Assembly: GCF_052425735.1 (NCBI RefSeq)
Contig: NC_135758.1
Location: 23,374,001-23,438,000 of the forward strand
DNA length: 64,000 nt
Direction of reading: 5' to 3'
Source of the DNA: Oculina patagonica
Taxonomy: Eukaryota
The translations under genes were made by a program, and so were the position numbers. The notes beneath the pieces are model-generated. The model was not told where the DNA came from and made no database searches. It saw nothing but the letters and a program-made list of their open reading frames with translations. How positions within the stretch are numbered: position 1 is the stretch's first letter; every line of letters begins with the position of its first letter. Of this stretch, positions 1 through 61,726 are shown piece by piece.

Positions 1-719
1 AGCTTATTGAAAAGTTCTTATTCCAAAAAAGTTAAAAAAGAACTCATTGAAAGAAAATAAGTTTTTCGATGAGTTGTTTACACAAGCTTTACACAAAAAG
101 TAAGGGTTGTGTAAACAAGCGATGCGAGACAGTTCACGTGCTCCACGCAACATTTCTTTTTTTAATGAAAATAGTATCCTATCTTGCTAGCGGTAAGGAA
201 AGGCTTTTGGTCTAATAACTGCTGTTCTTGTAGGATTCTAGGTTTTTATTTGCATGAAAAAAGGCATTTGTCGTGAACGACGTGACAAAGGGTCACACCA
301 CGCTCCTTCACATTGCGTGACATCCCAAGCGGCAATGGTAACGTTTGTTTCTTGAAGCGTAGTACATAAGACAAGTAATAGTACACTTTGTTCTTCCAAC
401 AGTCTTGTAAATAATAAATTGATTGACAAGTTCTTTGTTTTTTCGCCTTGTATCTCGAATTACTCGATTCGAAACTTGAAGTTGTTGACTGCTACAGTAA
501 CTCATTGATTAATTCATAATGTCAACTTTTATTCAAATGAAAGTCCACACATGTTCGCATAGCGGACTCACTTTTACTGTTATTAACCTCCTTACCAAAA
601 TGCCTCCATGACAAAATTGTTATTCAAAAAATGACAACTTATGCTAGGAAGATTAAGAAGAAAGATACCCTTCTGCATACTGGACTTCATCACCAGCGCA
701 GTTGATCGCTACACTTGGC

Positions 720-892
720 CTATGCATCGGTCAACTGTTGGTCGAATGACAGTCTAAAACCCACAGACTATTGGTCGACAGTCAGTTGACTATCGAGCGA
801 TAGTCAACCGATAGTCGACTGATATATTGGTTGACTGTTGACCGATATATGGGTCTATATATTAACTGAGGCCACCTATAGTACACATGATC
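720..892. repeat. Degenerate repeat fragment with short GTCGAC/CCGATAG-type internal repeats (intronic TE remnant)
   Basis: Recurring gtcgac/gttgac/ccgatag units ending in gaggccacctatagtacacatgatcc. Confidence 0.5.
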
Positions 893-958
893 CGAAATCT
901 CAAGTTCGATGACAATCTAATGTTAAATATTTGTGTGCACCACATGTACAGTACTCAC

Positions 959-1063
959 TTTATCACCTTCTGCCACATCACAGATCTTTTCCTCATTCAC
1001 TGGATTAACGGTAGGAAATGTTTTTCCACTGACAGAGTCCACAAACTCATTATTGATAAACAG
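959..1063 (-). CDS. Aldehyde dehydrogenase (ALDH1A/ALDH2 family), coding exon 2; gene continues beyond the left edge
   Basis: tttcag acceptor, 105-bp exon [41 protein letters not shown] donor. This is the classic ALDH1/2 N-terminal sequence. Confidence 0.93.
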
Positions 1064-1586
1064 CTGAAAGAAAAAGGAAAACAAATTAATCAAGTTAAGG
1101 TTACTAACTAAAATGCTTTTAAAACATGACTTCCACTGAAAGTTCAAGCAGTAAGTCCAAAAAATAATTACGAAGAATCTACTCATAGCATGGTTACCAT
1201 AGCAATTTGTTTACTGTTTCAGACAATCTCACCGTAGAGAACAGACACTTGTCAATAAAAGATTTTGGATAGACTGTTAACCTAGCTCTAAGGTAAAAAT
1301 TAATGACATTGATCCACACACCCCAAAATTGATTCAAGTACCTTGTAGTGTAGCTGTACCCACCCCAATTTTTTTCCTGGGGGGTAGGGGGCATGGTGAT
1401 GGGTACAGCCTAATGTAGGCCATAACACACCCCACCTCCACCCCCTGTGCATCCCTGTTACTTTCAAATTTACCTTCCCTCCCCAACACCACTGCCAACT
1501 CCTCCTGGGAATTACAATAAAATTAGCTTGGGGTGGAGATCTACAGGATTTTTTTGGCACAGGGTGTTTTAATCATCGGTTTACAT

Positions 1587-2553
1587 TTGCGTGATCCGTG
1601 GTGAACTTGCAGAAAAATAAAACAAAAGAAGTGGAAAGAAAGACGAAATATGGAGTCTATTAGAACCACACGTTTAACTTACATATATAATGTATCCAAG
1701 AAACCGTTTTTTTCTGTAGAAGAAAGGCTAATCTGGCGAGTTTTAAAGGAGTGTTTGACAGGAGAAATCGAACTCTCGTCGACGCCCTTGTTAATTAAAC
1801 AATCAAGCTTATAAAGTTTGTATTTACACTTCAAAACAGCTGACATGAAAATTAAAAGATCTAATGCGCGAAGATTAAAGCACCGTTAAAATTTCTCTTT
1901 ATAGATGATCTTGTTTCAGAGTCCTGTCTTAAAGAATTCTTAATAAAATGAATACACAAGCTATAATCCCTTGCGTGTGACTTACTAGCTAGTTAGTGAC
2001 AATAAAGTGAGTACACTTAGTTACCCTAAAATTTTACGTACCAAATTCAAAGCAGTGGCTTACCTTTGTGAACTTGATTTCCGGATTCCTTATGGCTTTA
2101 GGCATTTTGGACAATTGAATTTCGAAAGTTGAACCGGATAAGTGAGTAGACACGAAAAAAACCGTAGCGTCTGCAAGGAAAGGAGCTGAAAGGGTGAACT
2201 TGCACCGCACCGTACCGCTTGGCTAAGCTGAGAGAGCTGTCCCAGTCGGCGCGAACAAATATAGCCCCTTGCGTGACCCCTGCGTGTGACCCCGGGAGAC
2301 GATAGGAGATTGGAGCGAATGTGGCTGTGCAAGCACAAGATTGCGTGACAAGCCACTGCAGCAATAGAGCCAAAGGTGTCCTCGCGTGATGATATATTTA
2401 ACTAAGGCCTAGGGAAAATACCTATAATAAAATACGTGAACTGGTTTGCATCCAATCTATGGCTACAGGATTTCCAATTTCACCAGCGGCATATTATTAT
2501 TTTGCAAGACTCAATCAACGTGGCAACATGTCATTTTTGGTTCCGTCACGCGA
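1587..2553. promoter_or_regulatory. ALDH promoter/intron-1 region with clustered TNGCGTG (XRE-like) motifs
   Basis: TTGCGTG at 1587, 1971, 2269 and 2341; TCGCGTG at 2382; reverse copy CACGCGA at 2547; an extra GCGTG core at 2282; weak TATA-like element near 2257-2263 on the minus strand. Confidence 0.5.
2064..2105 (-). CDS. Aldehyde dehydrogenase (ALDH1A/ALDH2 family, cytosolic-type), coding exon 1 (MPKAIRNPEIKFTK)
   Basis: ATG at 2105, 14 codons, then an AAG|GTAAGC donor. Joins in phase 0 to the 959-1063 exon. No mitochondrial presequence, so ALDH1A-like rather than ALDH2-like. Confidence 0.88.
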
Positions 2554-3292
2554 TCTTCCTTCCCAAGTTTTGCGACGAAACAAGAATGTGACTTTGTAGA
2601 GAAACAGCCAACGAAGATCTTTTTGCGCAATAGCGATCATAGTGAAAATCTCCTTTCTTCCAACGCGTCTGTGGGCTTTTGCTGATTAGCAGTCGGTAGC
2701 ATGGCCGTGTAACAGTAACTTAGGAATTTAAAAGGCGGTTACCAAAAAATCAAGATTACTTTTGCTTTATATACCTGTAGAATGAAAGTATAAAGTAAAA
2801 ATTGAATTTCGGTTGAAATAGGCTTGGTCGAGTTTGTCAAGTTTGTCGGACTGACAAAGCACATTTTTATTTACAAAACCTTAGAAATAATTGTAAATAT
2901 GTACAGAGTCTATAATACAACATAGAGCAAATAGTTTTTCGGGAATTTAAGAATCACAAATGGCTTATTGTTCTGATATTCGCGTTCCATCAGTTCCATG
3001 CTGTTTGTGACAACCATGCACCGAGCTGAGTGTACATGGGCCAAAAAGTAGTGTTTTAACAATCACCTTTTGTATAAAAATCGAGAGAAGGCCAATGACA
3101 ATCGCTATAAGCGTATTCTTACTGTGGAATATATACATACATTTGCGCAACCTCAATCTAGTTGACTCTAGTTAGCCCCAGATGCTCAAATGCGCTGTGT
3201 CCCCGTAACAATTTGAGGGTTTCTATTAACAAAACTGGAATATTAACTGTTCGGTTGATAAGTTTAAGCTTGCTTACAAGTGAACATGTGTA

Positions 3293-4065
3293 CGTATTTT
3301 CTCAATTAAACGCCCCTGGCGTTTATTTCAAACTTGGCTTCGTGGACCCGGCGTTTATTTGAAGTCGGCGTTTAATCGGAGCCCGGCGTTTATTAAAGGA
3401 CTGTTATTTTTTGTCAATTTTTCAGATTGATCTGCTGTTACTTATCTCCGAGACCAAGGTGCAGTTTGTCAAGGCGGGGCGAGTTTTCTCTTCGTTTTGC
3501 CCCGAAAAACTGTTCCTGGGTCTTCAAAGTTGATAATTAACCAAAGGTACATTATTGCGGATTGGACACGTTTATGTTGCAATCAAGATTTGTGACAAAC
3601 AGAACATAAACGGTAAATGAACAATAAAGGAGCATGCAAGTAAAGGTTATGGGTACAAAGTTTTAAGTCCATAAACGGCAATGTCGACAACGTCTCACTC
3701 GTTTTTAAACGATCTCGTCCAACTTATAAGCAAACGCTGGAGGGATCCTAGAGATTTCAACGTGAGCACTAACATAAGAAAGGAAATGCGTCAGTCATGA
3801 AGACAGGATCGCGAACTTTGCTGGGTTTTATTTTGTTGTATTTTGTTATTTTGTTTTATTTTGTTTGTTGCTTAACGTTTAAAGAAATTTCCAAAGCAGC
3901 ATACCCTACTAGTATGTCATAGCGCTGCCATTCAAGAGAGTATATTTACTTGTTAGCTTGACCTCAAATAAGCGCCGAGACCTCAAACAAATTAACAATT
4001 TTGACCCAGCGTTTACACGAGGCCGGCGTTTAATCGGGGTCCGGCGATTAATCGAGAAAATACGG
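3293..4065. mobile_element. MITE, Tc1/mariner-pogo type
   Basis: TIRs cgtattttctcaattaaacgcc / ggcgattaatcgagaaaatacgg, TA flanks, repeated subterminal GGCGTTTA motifs. Confidence 0.8.
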
Positions 4066-10414: not shown

Positions 10415-12448
10415 ATGCACAACGGTGGTGTTCTTGGCGACGAGGGAAGAAAAGCTCTAAACGCTTGTGTAAAGGTCAAGATTTATGGGAAACCAGAAAC
10501 TCGAAAATATGATTTTACGACAGCAGCGAAGCGTTTAAATGGTTGTTATGCTGGTGAGTTGCCCGCCGGGTCGTACGCCTCGTGTTCGCTTCCCGTGAAA
10601 CTTGATGAAAGAGGACGCATGATCGAGAGAACTTACGACATTGTTGATATTCATGATGCGCTTGTTAACTTTGATGAAAAGATATGTGTTGAAAAATACC
10701 CGACAGAAGGACCGGGATCTGATAAACTGAAAGACTTGATTGAAAAACGAAGAGCTGATATTGAAAGAGAGCTTGAGGAAGCCACTGCTGACCCAAACCG
10801 ACGACACAGATATTCCTGGGTTGTTGCACAGCGAAGAGTGAGGGACTGCTTTGCTGGAAACTTTGCCGAAGATCGATGGCTAGTTTTAAGGTCAGGTGGA
10901 AAACCCCTCGACATTATTGAGATTTATCATGATGTTTCTCGTTGGGACAAAGCAACAAAAAAAGCCAGTGAAAAAAGAGCTACTTTAGAAAAGGAATATG
11001 CCGAAGCTGCTGCTGCTGTGGAGGAAAATGTAAAACATACACTCCGTAGATATCACCACGAAGAAGTAGTGAAGCGTTTGTGTGCTTGTTATTATGAGTC
11101 CATTCCTTTTAATGAAGTAAGAGATTCTGGCGTAGTCCCTGTCGAAATTGATAAAAATGGTCATAGGAATTTTAATAGTGATTATGATATTTTTGATATT
11201 CACAAAGCATTTCTTCAACTTAATGGGAAAAAACTGCTACAAAAATACCCAGAAGAAGGGCCTGGTTCTGAGGAATTGAAAAAGTTAATTGATGAACACA
11301 GAGATAATCTAAAAGAAGAATATCAGAAAGCCACATGTGATACAGGTGGTGAACCACGTCTACGTGAATATTCTGCAAGTGAGGCAGAGCGCAGAGTGAG
11401 AGATTGCTTTGCTGGTGCCCACTTGAGGGACACAGATATACTTGCCACAGTGAAGAAAGATGGAAATGATGGTGACCAGACTTATGACATTTTTGATATA
11501 AAGCAAGCAGTTGATCATTTTGACATAAAGACATTTGTTGATGCATTCAAGTACCCTAAAGGAGGGCAAAAATGTGGTGAAAAGAAGCAAATGGTTGATG
11601 AACAAAGGGCTGATATTCAAGAAGAGTATGAGCTAGCCACTAGTTGTACTGAAATTGAGCATGGCTCAGGGTTTATAGTTCATAATCATTTTATAATTAC
11701 CAATAGGCATGTGATTGAAACCTATTTAAATGAGACAGAGAGTCATGAAATCCGAATTTCCAATGCAGCCATTGGTGAACTGGCTTGCACGGTTGCTTAC
11801 TATGATGCGGGGAAAGATTTGGCATTACTTTTTTGTCCAGATCTCAATTTAGAGCAAAGTGGAATTTGTCCATTGCAGCTGTCCAGCCAGTCATTATTAC
11901 CAGGCATGTCAATTTTTTCTTTTGGTTATCCCATGAGCCATACAGAAGAAACAGCTCTCTTTGTAAGTGGCAATGTCTCTGGTTCCAAGAAAACCTTAGC
12001 AGGTCATTCAATGGTTGTTTTGAATTGCTCCCTCAACTCTGGCAACTCAGGTGGTCCGGTACTGTGTTGGGTCAATGGTCAATTAAAGGTGGCTGGTGTT
12101 GCAACACAGAAACATTTGAAACAGATTCTAACCTTGGAGGAGAGGAAAATCATTGAAAAAATACGGAATTCATTACAAACCCATGCCATTCCTGATGTGC
12201 CAGATGATCATCTTGTAAAGCGTTCAGAGGCAAGTTTATTTCAGACTGATTATTTTTTAGAACTGCATCCAGTTTGTCAGACTTCTATGTCCCTACTGAC
12301 ATTGAAACTGTACGATGCCTTGGAAACACACTCTCAGTTTAATTTAAGTAATGCCTTGCCTGGACATTTAGTTAATAAGTTTATCAAAAACGCTATCAGT
12401 GAATGTACTGGAGTGTACAAAGAAGAGTTGGCAGAAATGTTAAAGTAA
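10415..12448 (+). CDS. Trypsin-like serine protease (HtrA/Trypsin_2-type motifs) with four internal repeats, single coding exon, 677 aa
   Basis: GSGF, TNRH (His432), KDLALL (Asp468), FGYP and GNSGGP (Ser545). Polypyrimidine tract and cag acceptor at 10390, in-frame stop just before the ATG. No signal peptide or PDZ domain evident. Confidence 0.92.
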   Translation: MHNGGVLGDEGRKALNACVKVKIYGKPETRKYDFTTAAKRLNGCYAGELPAGSYASCSLPVKLDERGRMIERTYDIVDIHDALVNFDEKICVEKYPTEGPGSDKLKDLIEKRRADIERELEEATADPNRRHRYSWVVAQRRVRDCFAGNFAEDRWLVLRSGGKPLDIIEIYHDVSRWDKATKKASEKRATLEKEYAEAAAAVEENVKHTLRRYHHEEVVKRLCACYYESIPFNEVRDSGVVPVEIDKNGHRNFNSDYDIFDIHKAFLQLNGKKLLQKYPEEGPGSEELKKLIDEHRDNLKEEYQKATCDTGGEPRLREYSASEAERRVRDCFAGAHLRDTDILATVKKDGNDGDQTYDIFDIKQAVDHFDIKTFVDAFKYPKGGQKCGEKKQMVDEQRADIQEEYELATSCTEIEHGSGFIVHNHFIITNRHVIETYLNETESHEIRISNAAIGELACTVAYYDAGKDLALLFCPDLNLEQSGICPLQLSSQSLLPGMSIFSFGYPMSHTEETALFVSGNVSGSKKTLAGHSMVVLNCSLNSGNSGGPVLCWVNGQLKVAGVATQKHLKQILTLEERKIIEKIRNSLQTHAIPDVPDDHLVKRSEASLFQTDYFLELHPVCQTSMSLLTLKLYDALETHSQFNLSNALPGHLVNKFIKNAISECTGVYKEELAEMLK

Positions 12449-12523
12449 TTTTTTGTGACTCATTGAAATGCAGTAATTCTTAACTATGCCTTGGATCATT
12501 CATCAATCAATGTAACTTTTAAT

Positions 12524-12928
12524 CCCGGGGCGGTGGGGGGGGGGGGGGCACTCAAAAAAGTTTTATACGGGGAGGCTCCGCCCCAAGCTTTTACCCCTTA
12601 CCCTTTTATATACCATTTTGACAGAAATTGTACCCCTTTTGTATACCTTTTAATGAAAAAAGGTACCCCTTTCATATACCTAAAAGACATGGCATAGACT
12701 AAAATAGATAAATTAATTAAAATAATACAGCCATAAAGTGCGTCTGCTCGAAATATTATAACTAAAGGCCCAGTTAAAAACATAAATGACGGATTTTCAT
12801 ACCCTTTCGTTTACCAAAACTTTTGAAACTTCTACCCTTTTATACACCTAAAGCCTAAAAAAGGTACCCCTTTCGGGTGGAGCCTCCCCGTATAGGCCAT
12901 TATAGGGAGTACCCCCCCCCCCCCCGGG
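12524..12928. mobile_element. MITE with CCCGGG(G)n termini and 8-bp TSD
   Basis: Exact TSD cttttaat at 12516-12523 and 12929-12936; internal TACCCCTTT repeats; inserted 75 bp after the protease stop codon. Confidence 0.88.
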
Positions 12929-13599
12929 CTTTTAATATGTAGTTGTTACACTTAAAAGGTACAGAAGCAATAAGTTACTATTGAATAAATAAGGAACACA
13001 GTTTATGTAACCTAATGTTATTAGGTAGACTTCTCACACATCCTGTCAGTGTTGGCTAAAAAGTGTTTCATTCGACATATTTTAAGGGTGAGCTGCATAC
13101 AAAGATGTTAAGTGTCCTGTTCTATAGAAATTTCACAGGGACTGTAGTTGTTTGATAGCTGCTTGAAACAGGATGTGATAATTTGCATTCATGTATAAAG
13201 TTGTTAATGAGGTACAAAAACCTTTCTGCAAATTCTATTTACCATGATGTTACTTCTCTTTTATATATATGGTTTTGCTAGCTGGCATTTAACGCAACTG
13301 AAAGTTTAGTCATATTTATTTGTAGTTATGGATCAAGAGTTTGTTATAAATTAAATGAACAACTGTAACATACAACCCAGTTAAGAAATAGAAATTGGTG
13401 GCATAATTTTATTTGTTCTTGTAATCAGTGTTATCAAGGCTTGTTTAGGCACAATAAATAAATTTAATTTCTTAAAATAGTATTATTTCACCATAAGTGC
13501 ATTCTTTCCCATGGTTAAGGCCAACTAGCATTGTGCACCATGAGCCAGTCATACCAAAATTTAATAATGATACTGCTATACATCAATCGAAAGTTTTGC

Positions 13600-14146
13600 G
13601 TGTTTTATAATGACCGAGCTATGAACAAATCATCTAAATTACTGAGTAATTTAGATGATTTGTTCCGGACATTGGGGTGGCGAAGACACTTATCAAAGTT
13701 TAGAACAGAAGTCTATCCTAATGTATAAAACATTACATGGTATGACTCCTGATTATCTGAGATCAAGATTCGTATATCGTGACGATGTTAGTGCTTATCG
13801 TTTAAGGAATACCGAAAACAAATTAGTTCTTCCACAACCTCGAACTGATTTTCTCAAGAAAAGTTTTTCGTACAGTGGAGCTCAGTTGTGGAACAACTTA
13901 CCTGAAGACCTAAGACAAGCATCTTCACTGGCCGATTTCAAATCTAAATTAATTCGGCACAGTTTAAAGTAATATCTCAATTGTAAGTAAATTTTAGACA
14001 CGGCCTCCATGAAAAGCAGACTTTTCTTTTGTTATTTTGAATTTGTTGTTATTAAATTTTTGTAGTTAGTTAGATAGGTAGATAGTCCAGTAACTTAATT
14101 GACTGATGGAAAACCGTGTATAAATAAAGTTATCTTATCTTATCTT
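13600..14146 (+). mobile_element. 5'-truncated L2/Crack-like LINE 3' end
   Basis: YKTLHGMTPDYL...YRLRN...LPQPRTDFLKKSFSYSGAQLWNNLP is the typical ORF2 C-terminus; ends in aataaag(ttatc)n tail. Confidence 0.85.
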
Positions 14147-60405: not shown

Positions 60406-61479
60406 TCATAGTTCAACTATAAGCTGTTTAAGGGATATTCTAACATGCAGAGCGCGGGCGAGACATTTGTTACTGACGCTCTCTAAACAATCATTACGTC
60501 GGACAAACTTGCCCAACATTTTTTGCAACAGAAATCCCAAAGAGAAAACGTCACTGGCTGGAGACTGTGTGTGCGTACCACCAATAAGCTCAGGGGCAAT
60601 CCACGGATATTTACTTTTGTAAAATTTCTTCTGAACCTCTGTTAGTTCATACCGCTTTGGATTAGAGCGTGGTCTACTTTTGCCAAAATCGATTACAACT
60701 GGTTTCCACTCTTGCGGCGTTCGATGCATTAGTACATTGTTCTCTTTTATATCGTTGTGTAGCCAACCGGCTTCGTGAAGGCAGCGAATAGCATCCACAA
60801 TTTGCTTAAAAATTCTTTCGATATGATCGAATTCGATTATACCGTATTCAATTGCCTTCAGTAAAGAAAAGGACTTCTTGGCCTTACCATAAAATTGAGA
60901 TACCATTAAGTATGGTTTCTCTTTCATACAAACGCCTAAAACGTAGGGCAAGTTTGGGTGATGTTCTTTTTGAAGTTCAGAAATAATTCCTGCCTCCTTT
61001 TTGACTTCATAAACGTTGTTCATTTTAAATTCTTTAACAGCCACTGGAAAATTGCCGTTAAAGTACATAAGGCGCGTTACACCATATGTTCCTTCCCCGA
61101 GTACGATTTCTTTCTCGTCAGGAGACGAGAGCATGGAGCGAGATAATTCTGGCACTGTGATCTTCGGCTGGTGGCGCACTGGTCCTAGCGTACCCTTGTT
61201 GCTTATCCTACTGGGAAGAACGGCTGATCGAAGATATGGTGTCAAGAAAGTCGAACGCGGATTCCTACCCACTGCCATTTTTACCATTGTGCGGGCCCTC
61301 GAAAAATAATTGGCTTTCGGCATTGTTGGTGATTCAACAGCAACAGCGGCGGCAGACTTTTCTACTACCGAAGCCTTTTTAGCTTGTTTCTTTTTGAGTT
61401 TCCTTTGTTTTTTATACTTTTTCCTATCCTCTTTAGTGTGCCTTTCTCTTTTAATGCCTTGTTTTTTTTCCTGATCCAT
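60406..61479 (-). CDS. Intronless Ser/Thr-type protein kinase (non-RD) with Lys/Arg-rich N-terminus, 357 aa
   Basis: First ATG at 61479 (aaaATGG); LGEGTYG, VAVKE, HPNL, LHNDIKENNV, IDFGK, WIAPE, SDVFSLG; AATAAA downstream near 60334. Confidence 0.9.
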   Translation of the reverse strand: MDQEKKQGIKRERHTKEDRKKYKKQRKLKKKQAKKASVVEKSAAAVAVESPTMPKANYFSRARTMVKMAVGRNPRSTFLTPYLRSAVLPSRISNKGTLGPVRHQPKITVPELSRSMLSSPDEKEIVLGEGTYGVTRLMYFNGNFPVAVKEFKMNNVYEVKKEAGIISELQKEHHPNLPYVLGVCMKEKPYLMVSQFYGKAKKSFSLLKAIEYGIIEFDHIERIFKQIVDAIRCLHEAGWLHNDIKENNVLMHRTPQEWKPVVIDFGKSRPRSNPKRYELTEVQKKFYKSKYPWIAPELIGGTHTQSPASDVFSLGFLLQKMLGKFVRRNDCLESVSNKCLARALHVRISLKQLIVEL

Positions 61480-61726
61480 TTTTTCTTTATAGTTTTTGTG
61501 AAAGACAATATTGATTGCGAACCACAAAATACTAATCACTGACTAGTAAAGGGGGATTATATTATAAAGGGGATTATTTCATCAGTGACGAGTTTAAAGA
61601 TTTCGCATATTTTAAACTATTACTGCTGCTGCCCAGTGTGCTGTTGATAGACAATTTACACGGCTCAATTGTCCCAGCATCTGTACGTCGACGATACATG
61701 AGTTTTGGCTTAGAAATTGGAAAATC

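Follow-up and report, generated by a model that had tools for sequence, protein, structure and literature searches.

A Trypsin_2/HtrA-like protease of stony corals with a predicted three-piece catalytic fold, a nested array of a new repeat domain and a second insertion

The window analyzed here is a stretch of 64,000 nucleotides (nt) of the Oculina patagonica genome (RefSeq assembly GCF_052425735.1, contig NC_135758.1, positions 23,374,001 to 23,438,000 of the forward strand), and positions within it are counted from its first letter. In AT-rich, gene-poor surroundings it carries a complete single-exon open reading frame (ORF) for a 677-amino-acid (aa) protein with a Trypsin_2 (PF13365) protease domain at aa 417–557 (Pfam, E 2.4e-19; 70.9 bits against a cut-off of 27.6), while nothing significant was found upstream of this domain in the Pfam scan. 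An earlier note made from the sequence alone had described the product as a bacterial-style serine protease whose fold is split by four copies of an unrecognized repeat, and on re-check the ORF and every motif and residue number quoted in that note were correct. The ORF start, MHNG(G/D)VLGDEGRK, was conserved among homologs. Residues K13 to G25 read KALNACVKVKIYG and the GSGF motif begins only at aa 417. No signal peptide or transmembrane segment was found in the 677-aa protein, the N-terminus being acidic and non-hydrophobic and the Kyte-Doolittle maximum over a 19-residue window being 1.04. Judged from these sequence features the gene is intact and the protease is cytosolic. The ORF was covered at low depth, without splice joints, by contigs from runs which were only guessed to be RNA.

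The catalytic triad His432, Asp468 and Ser545 (GNSGGP), described as intact in the earlier note, was found to be invariant in 69 aligned family members. Matches among PDB sequences were to HTRA1, plant Deg1 and mycobacterial HtrA-like proteases, all of which began at about aa 414. When aa 1–30 and aa 618–677 were searched against PDB sequences nothing was found, and the two end pieces were therefore assigned to the protease fold by structure only.

An AlphaFold2 (AF2) monomer model was built on 69 homologs and had a mean predicted local distance difference test score (pLDDT) of 82.5 and a predicted template modelling score (pTM) of 0.70. In the model a helix (8–17) is followed by an 8-residue strand (18–25); strands of at least three residues are absent from aa 26–411 and resume with aa 412–421. 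As no partner strand is available in aa 26–411, strand 18–25 must pair within the protease barrel. Superposition with VIA-align recovered about 50 solved HtrA, Deg, DegP, DegS and DegQ entries with Z scores of 23–25 and a root mean square deviation of 2.1–2.8 Å, with 177–199 residues aligned, from model residues 1–12 through 661–665. With HtrA1 (3nzi_A), 196 of 211 residues were superposed at 2.5 Å (Z 25), spanning model residues 1..663. The contiguous core (412–566) has only 155 residues, so the N-terminal 25 residues and aa 644–665 must supply the rest of the aligned residues. A Foldseek search of Swiss-Prot aligned HTRA1 residues 196–377 (182 aa) to query residues 409–667 (259 aa), leaving about 77 query residues unmatched, and all of the top 30 fold matches were HtrA/Deg proteins.

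The model and superpositions support a catalytic fold that would be assembled from three separate pieces, aa 5–25, 412–566 and 644–665, and likewise support aa 8–25 as the predicted equivalent of the N-terminal helix and first strand of HtrA proteases. Because aa 8–25 superposes on this helix and strand, the repeats lie in the place of loop LA, enclosed by strands beta1 and beta2. Both the assignment of the N-terminal segment to the protease and the nesting of the repeats at loop LA had been put forward in the earlier note, and both are supported by the strand order in the model and the VIA-align range. The term bacterial-style also proved apt, the nearest folds being HtrA/Deg and true bacterial homologs being present (see below).

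A second, mostly helical insertion (aa 567–643), absent from the earlier note, was seen in the Foldseek and VIA-align ranges. It sits after the catalytic-serine strand and before the last barrel strand (FNLSNALP), at a position which we take to be that of HtrA loop L2 from HtrA nomenclature and the alignment ranges rather than from a residue-level printout. The flanks of this insert were conserved while its middle (591–618) was variable and of low pLDDT. Mean pairwise identity across the family was highest in aa 5–25 (0.88), with 0.73 for the protease core, 0.43–0.54 for the repeat units, 0.72–0.75 for the flanks of the L2 insert and 0.29 for its middle; by these values the units evolve faster than the catalytic core. 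Residues Q641, N643, L644 and A647 were invariant in the 69 aligned members. The N-terminal motif (D)VLGDEGRKALNACVKVKIYG was nearly invariant in the family and stays directly at the N-terminus whatever insert follows it. The three-piece fold fits the conservation pattern of the N-terminus, the core and the insert flanks. The features of the protein, of the window and of the related loci are collected in Table 1.

Table 1. Positions of the protease gene, its predicted parts, neighbouring features of the window and loci of family members elsewhere
Feature	Position	Strand	Evidence or remark
Complete single-exon ORF	window 10415..12448	+	677 aa plus stop
N-terminal helix (8–17) and strand beta1 (18–25), aa 5–25	window 10427..10489	+	AF2, VIA-align, 88% mean identity
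Repeat unit 1, aa 26–127	window 10490..10795	+	
Repeat unit 2, aa 128–208	window 10796..11038	+	shortened, basic, long helix 167–203
Repeat unit 3, aa 209–312	window 11039..11350	+	
Repeat unit 4, aa 313–411	window 11351..11647	+	also modelled alone
Chymotrypsin-fold protease core (Trypsin_2), aa 412–566	window 11648..12112	+	Pfam, PDB matches, alignment, structure
His432	window 11708–11710	+	catalytic triad
Asp468	window 11816–11818	+	catalytic triad
Ser545	window 12047–12049	+	catalytic triad
Second, mostly helical insertion, aa 567–643	window 12113..12343	+	Foldseek and VIA alignment ranges, AF2
Last barrel strand (644–649, FNLSNALP), C-terminal helix and terminal helix, aa 644–677	window 12344..12445	+	AF2, VIA-align, Foldseek
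High-copy repeat element	window 12482–13017		begins 34 nt past the protease stop codon
105-aa ORF	window 13655–13972	+	no Pfam match
Tandem series of at least 8 single-exon rhodopsin-family G protein-coupled receptor (GPCR) ORFs	window 15451–57900	all +	7tm_1, E 1e-17 to 3e-31
377-aa ORF with protein kinase domain	window 60406–61539	-	Pkinase, E 1.3e-26
Two family members (723 and 626 aa), another coral assembly	L006 10001–12172 and 18671–20551	same strand	6.5 kb apart
P0181 locus, bacterial	L001 7496–17584		HU gene on one side; Schlafen/AlbA_2-HATPase, PDC-S06 (PADLOC E = 0), SbcD and LmuB/SbcC-like ATPase on the other
P0315, bacterial	100-kb contig of JGI metagenome 3300059835		neighbours DnaJ-ankyrin, OTU, U-box, astacin, FG-GAP, IS3
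P0191, bacterial	L004 7965–9223		stops at 319 aa, 98-aa ORF directly after; among housekeeping genes

The similarity of the four units was assessed by comparing Smith-Waterman scores with those of 300 shuffles. The z values were 33 for units 1 and 3, 22.7 for units 1 and 4, 18.9 for units 3 and 4, 12.2 for units 2 and 4 and 6.2 for units 1 and 2, with units 2 and 3 the one weak pair (z = 2.1), and the four repeats are thus real; BLASTP of aa 1–415 against itself gave the identity match only. The motifs PVx[LI]DxxG and KYPxEGPGS were present in units 1 and 3 and RRVRDCFAG in units 2 and 4, and unit 2 was without the KYP-EGPGS segment. Units were acidic on average (net charge -2.7), with an isoelectric point (pI) of about 5 for units 1, 3 and 4. 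Each unit of the AF2 model closes with a helix of 22–37 residues. Unit 4 modelled alone had a pLDDT of 78 and contained a two-residue beta bridge (5–6 with 42–43), helices 7–15 and 45–58, a poorly defined loop (16–41) and a long helix (72–96).

When 1.84 billion cluster representatives were searched with a profile built from 56 units, only 90 proteins were matched, and the distant matches which were examined all carried Trypsin_2, barring two repetitive proteins that were chance matches. Against PDB sequences the repeat profile gave chance matches only (E >= 0.3), and a Pfam scan of the 56 individual units returned nothing significant. Single-unit fold searches were also not significant, either by Foldseek against the PDB (best E 2.3 or higher) or against the AlphaFold database (AFDB) clusters (best E 1.3 or higher), and a wide VIA search gave a best Z of 4.2 with no MerR protein among the top matches. 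An ESM-atlas feature search with units 3–4 scored at most 0.68, which is an uninformative level. As to a death-fold or effector-associated adaptor, no death-fold chain was present among the PDB, AFDB and atlas matches of the unit, which with its beta bridges and three main helices is unlike the six-helix bundle of the death fold. These Pfam, PDB and fold-library searches left the unit as unrecognized as it had been in the earlier note, and they support a repeat module of about 95 residues which was previously undescribed and is found only in this protease family.

In a maximum likelihood (ML) tree of the units, the first, second and last units each formed a clade across paralogs, as positional orthologs, indicating that the array is older than the radiation of the family. 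At its deepest split the tree separated first and second from third and last units (support 99/96). The earlier note had read the shared motifs as an (AB)2 arrangement; although the sharing between units 1 and 3 and between units 2 and 4 is real, a block duplication of this kind would predict a different split, and this part of the note was not supported. The fifth unit of five-unit proteins formed a separate clade inside the third/last group, and the units of one-unit proteins sat on long branches with no firm placement.

A word-index search in which the best 8000 candidates were scored identified at least 563 proteins at E <= 1e-3, and among the matches listed most aligned end to end at 41–67% identity. 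Every named match was from a stony coral (Oculina patagonica, Desmophyllum pertusum or Stylophora pistillata), the S. pistillata member being annotated as a 'putative periplasmic serine endoprotease DegP-like'. By a hidden Markov model (HMM) of the unit, full-length members contained 3 to 6 units and the family as a whole 0–6, which agrees with the expandable array, at one and the same position, that had been proposed. Shorter members kept the N-terminal motif, followed by one of four inserts and then GSGF, the insert being one unit, one unit with an acidic low-complexity linker, about 150 aa unrecognized by the unit HMM, or about 85 aa. Family genes were uninterrupted ORFs. Given the tandem pair in Table 1 and the 3–4 members found on one contig in several other assemblies, the family expands by tandem duplication, and on present sequence data it is a large, lineage-expanded, intronless gene family in stony corals. 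No paper on this coral protease family was found in the literature.

Paralogs P0033, P0093 and P0106 begin with MGNCFS or MGSCFS, which resembles N-myristoylation plus palmitoylation signals, while the one-unit members P0299, P0185 and P0288 have Cys-rich, CaaX-like C-termini (..CCIQ, ..CMLC, ..CTLC). These lipidation-like N-termini and CaaX-like tails suggest that part of the family may be membrane-anchored.

Three homologs, each with one unit, were located on bacterial contigs (P0181, P0315 and P0191). P0181, from a Gammaproteobacteria metagenome-assembled genome, shared 44% identity with the protease and C-terminal part of the coral protein, and by its gene content its setting is a defence island. 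P0315 carries a 200-aa Ser/Thr-rich tail and lies amid genes which, from the gene list, we presume to be characteristic of bacteria that live with a host and possess eukaryote-like effectors; the bacterium carrying it may be of this kind and use the protease as an effector. P0191 looks truncated, and its gene may have been split by a stop codon or frameshift. A search of GTDB species representatives with two peptide patterns gave 172 pattern matches, none of which was confirmed as a further copy. In an ML tree of the protease, rooted with Roseateles S1 peptidases, the three bacterial homologs formed one clade (support 99/98) adjoining the eukaryotic one-unit clade. From the sequence comparison an exchange of genes between bacteria and corals is clear. 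As the outgroup branch was very long (about 9 substitutions per site) and a topology with all eukaryotic members together was not rejected (approximately unbiased test, p = 0.1), no direction of transfer is claimed.

Like HtrA, DegP and Deg proteases (MEROPS S1C), the coral protein has an N-terminal helix and beta1, a GSGF beta2, a His-Asp-Ser triad, GNSGGP and a C-terminal strand plus helix, and like DegP it has a long element in the place of loop LA; sequence identity to this family is only 18–26%. The LA loops of DegP extend into a neighbouring active site, distort L1 and L2 and inactivate the enzyme, and in the hexamer they form pillars between trimers (PMC3081313). The LA element of DegP is, however, a loop of about 50 aa, whereas that of the coral protein has 386 aa and would comprise four folded modules, and coral L2 carries an extra helical insert of about 75 aa. 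Also unlike HtrA, the coral protein was without a PDZ domain (no Pfam match at E up to 1), a single helix following the protease fold, and without a signal peptide, transmembrane anchor or targeting sequence. Lacking both a PDZ domain and an extracytoplasmic location it was not filed as a canonical HtrA; the description that fits it best is that of a Trypsin_2/HtrA-like protease which bears an L2 insert and, nested in its fold, an array of a new domain. It is HtrA-like at the level of the modelled fold, and its catalysis is probably HtrA-like too.

Two other groups of trypsin-like proteases were compared. As an intracellular animal PF13365 protease with large non-catalytic regulatory regions the coral protein resembles FAM111A/B, and FAM111A is known to autocleave and restrict viruses (PMC9798293). 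In FAM111, however, the ubiquitin-like (UBL) and DNA-binding regions are N-terminal to the protease, whereas the coral insert is nested within it. No UBL match was obtained with Pfam, FAM111 was outside the top 30 Swiss-Prot fold matches, and there was no homology to the repeats; with no UBL and the nearest folds all HtrA/Deg, membership in FAM111 was rejected. Trypsin-like effectors are also recurrent in prokaryotic conflict and defence systems (PMC8195603), and those considered were the class XI reverse transcriptase (RT)-protease, the Lamassu LmuA-protease, Avs1 and EAD- or bDLD-linked trypsin domains. The coral protease domain matched the PADLOC models RT-Protease_XI (E 9e-18), LmuA (3e-12) and Avs1b (5e-9), but these matches were no stronger than that to generic Trypsin_2 and were confined to the protease part. 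Neither in the coral protein nor adjacent to it was an RT, STAND, SMC or adaptor domain found, the neighbours in the window being 7tm_1 GPCR ORFs and a kinase. With no partner modules fused or adjacent, assignment as an effector of a known defence system was rejected; a likeness to such effectors remains in that one bacterial family member, P0181, lies in a defence island.

We consider it probable, though well short of certain, that the protein is a cytosolic, PDZ-less HtrA-like protease with a three-piece fold in which the LA array and the L2 insert gate activity. PDZ domains and short sensor loops are the usual regulators of HtrA proteases, and here the two loops by which DegP controls its active site, LA and L2, bear folded insertions instead. 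The array would be fixed at its two ends to neighbouring strands of the barrel, close to the active-site loops, and loop L2 helps to build the S1 pocket; on these grounds the array and the L2 insert would regulate jointly. They would then take over the regulatory role of the PDZ domains and loop LA of DegP, forming a lobe by the catalytic cleft. This lobe would hold the protease inactive, and its displacement by a ligand, by a partner or through an oligomeric change would release proteolysis. The fast-evolving modules of variable copy number would be the recognition part. Several points weigh against this reading. The contact between array, L2 insert and active site is a putative one, and a polyA raw-read run had 0 reads inside the protease ORF, so that transcription of the gene is likewise presumed. 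Gating is, moreover, only one among several roles an LA insertion might have, and for a protein lacking PDZ the way in which canonical HtrAs are activated is not directly transferable.

It could be argued that the N-terminal 25 residues are a separate targeting or interaction motif and the array a plain N-terminal fusion to the protease, the more so as the three-piece fold was deduced from one AF2 model and from alignment ranges. We consider this highly improbable, since an 8-residue strand needs partners which aa 26–411 do not offer, the HtrA entries align from model residues 1–12 over 177–199 residues each, and the motif is fixed at the N-terminus irrespective of the insert; the modelled fold thus already disfavours it. 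A nested array need not act as a gate, however. It may instead be a scaffold for oligomerization or a cage, in which the units, through their long C-terminal helices, would form a higher-order assembly with the active sites shut away inside it. The helix which closes every unit, the inter-trimer pillars formed by the DegP LA loops (PMC3081313) and a pTM that suggests defined packing of the units would all suit a scaffold, but fast evolution and a variable number of units are less expected of a fixed architecture and the structural model is of a monomer only, and we regard this role as rather unlikely.

Excision of the array by autoproteolysis, as a pro-region or polyprotein giving an activated protease and/or free modules of about 95 aa, would be topologically possible because the predicted insertion lies between two strands that stay paired; the N-terminal strand would then remain in the barrel non-covalently, as the chymotrypsin A chain does. 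That FAM111A, another animal Trypsin_2 protease, autocleaves (PMC9798293) is in keeping with this. No conserved cleavage motif turned up, although none was looked for, the units pack as high-pLDDT folded domains with short linkers, and the protease was present in all non-fragment proteins with repeats that were examined, with no sign of free units, so that excision appears quite improbable. We also considered whether the units are degenerate MerR/excisionase-type winged helices which would tether the protease to nucleic acid and make this a DNA- or RNA-dependent protease like FAM111A. The best weak shape matches of unit residues 1–61 were MerR/HTH_17 N-terminal domains (atlas TM-score 0.60 by hit, 50 residues, 2.6 Å), at least 6 of the top 30 AFDB clusters were MerR/HTH_17-like, and the long helix of unit 4 gave a weak Pfam match to MerR-DNA-bind (E 0.0016). 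In the scan of individual units, however, only 2 of 56 matched MerR-DNA-bind, at E 0.06 or worse, the Foldseek matches had E > 1 and TM-scores < 0.5 by query, MerR was not among the top VIA matches, and the region of the would-be recognition helix is the least confident part of the unit model. The acidic units further disfavour nucleic-acid binding. A MerR-like identity, which we regard as very unlikely, was rejected as unproven and the resemblance of residues 1–61 was kept as a lead only.

If the array does gate the enzyme, as we favour, it would show a new means of making a protease switchable and might serve as an engineering scaffold. Intracellular immunity, symbiosis control and stress responses of reef-building corals are poorly understood, and the strong expansion of the family in these animals provides concrete candidate genes. 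A part in immunity, stress or allorecognition is plausible, if speculative, in view of the lineage-specific expansion, the similarity to defence effectors and the general cnidarian pattern (PMC8195603). A bolder proposal, which we put forward as an unlikely one, is that these proteins form a coral-specific class of intracellular sensor-executioner proteases in which binding of a microbial, viral, symbiont or non-self ligand by the array would trigger proteolysis, a one-chain, NTPase-free counterpart of NLR/Avs logic. Were this true, the bacterial homologs would mark either a prokaryotic source or capture by coral-associated bacteria.

Downstream of the protease gene, the high-copy repeat element had a summed contig depth of 500–3500, compared with about 10–50 across the protease ORF. 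The 105-aa ORF that follows it gave the impression of a C-terminal remnant of a retroelement ORF. The GPCR series beyond looks like a lineage-specific, chemoreceptor-like array.

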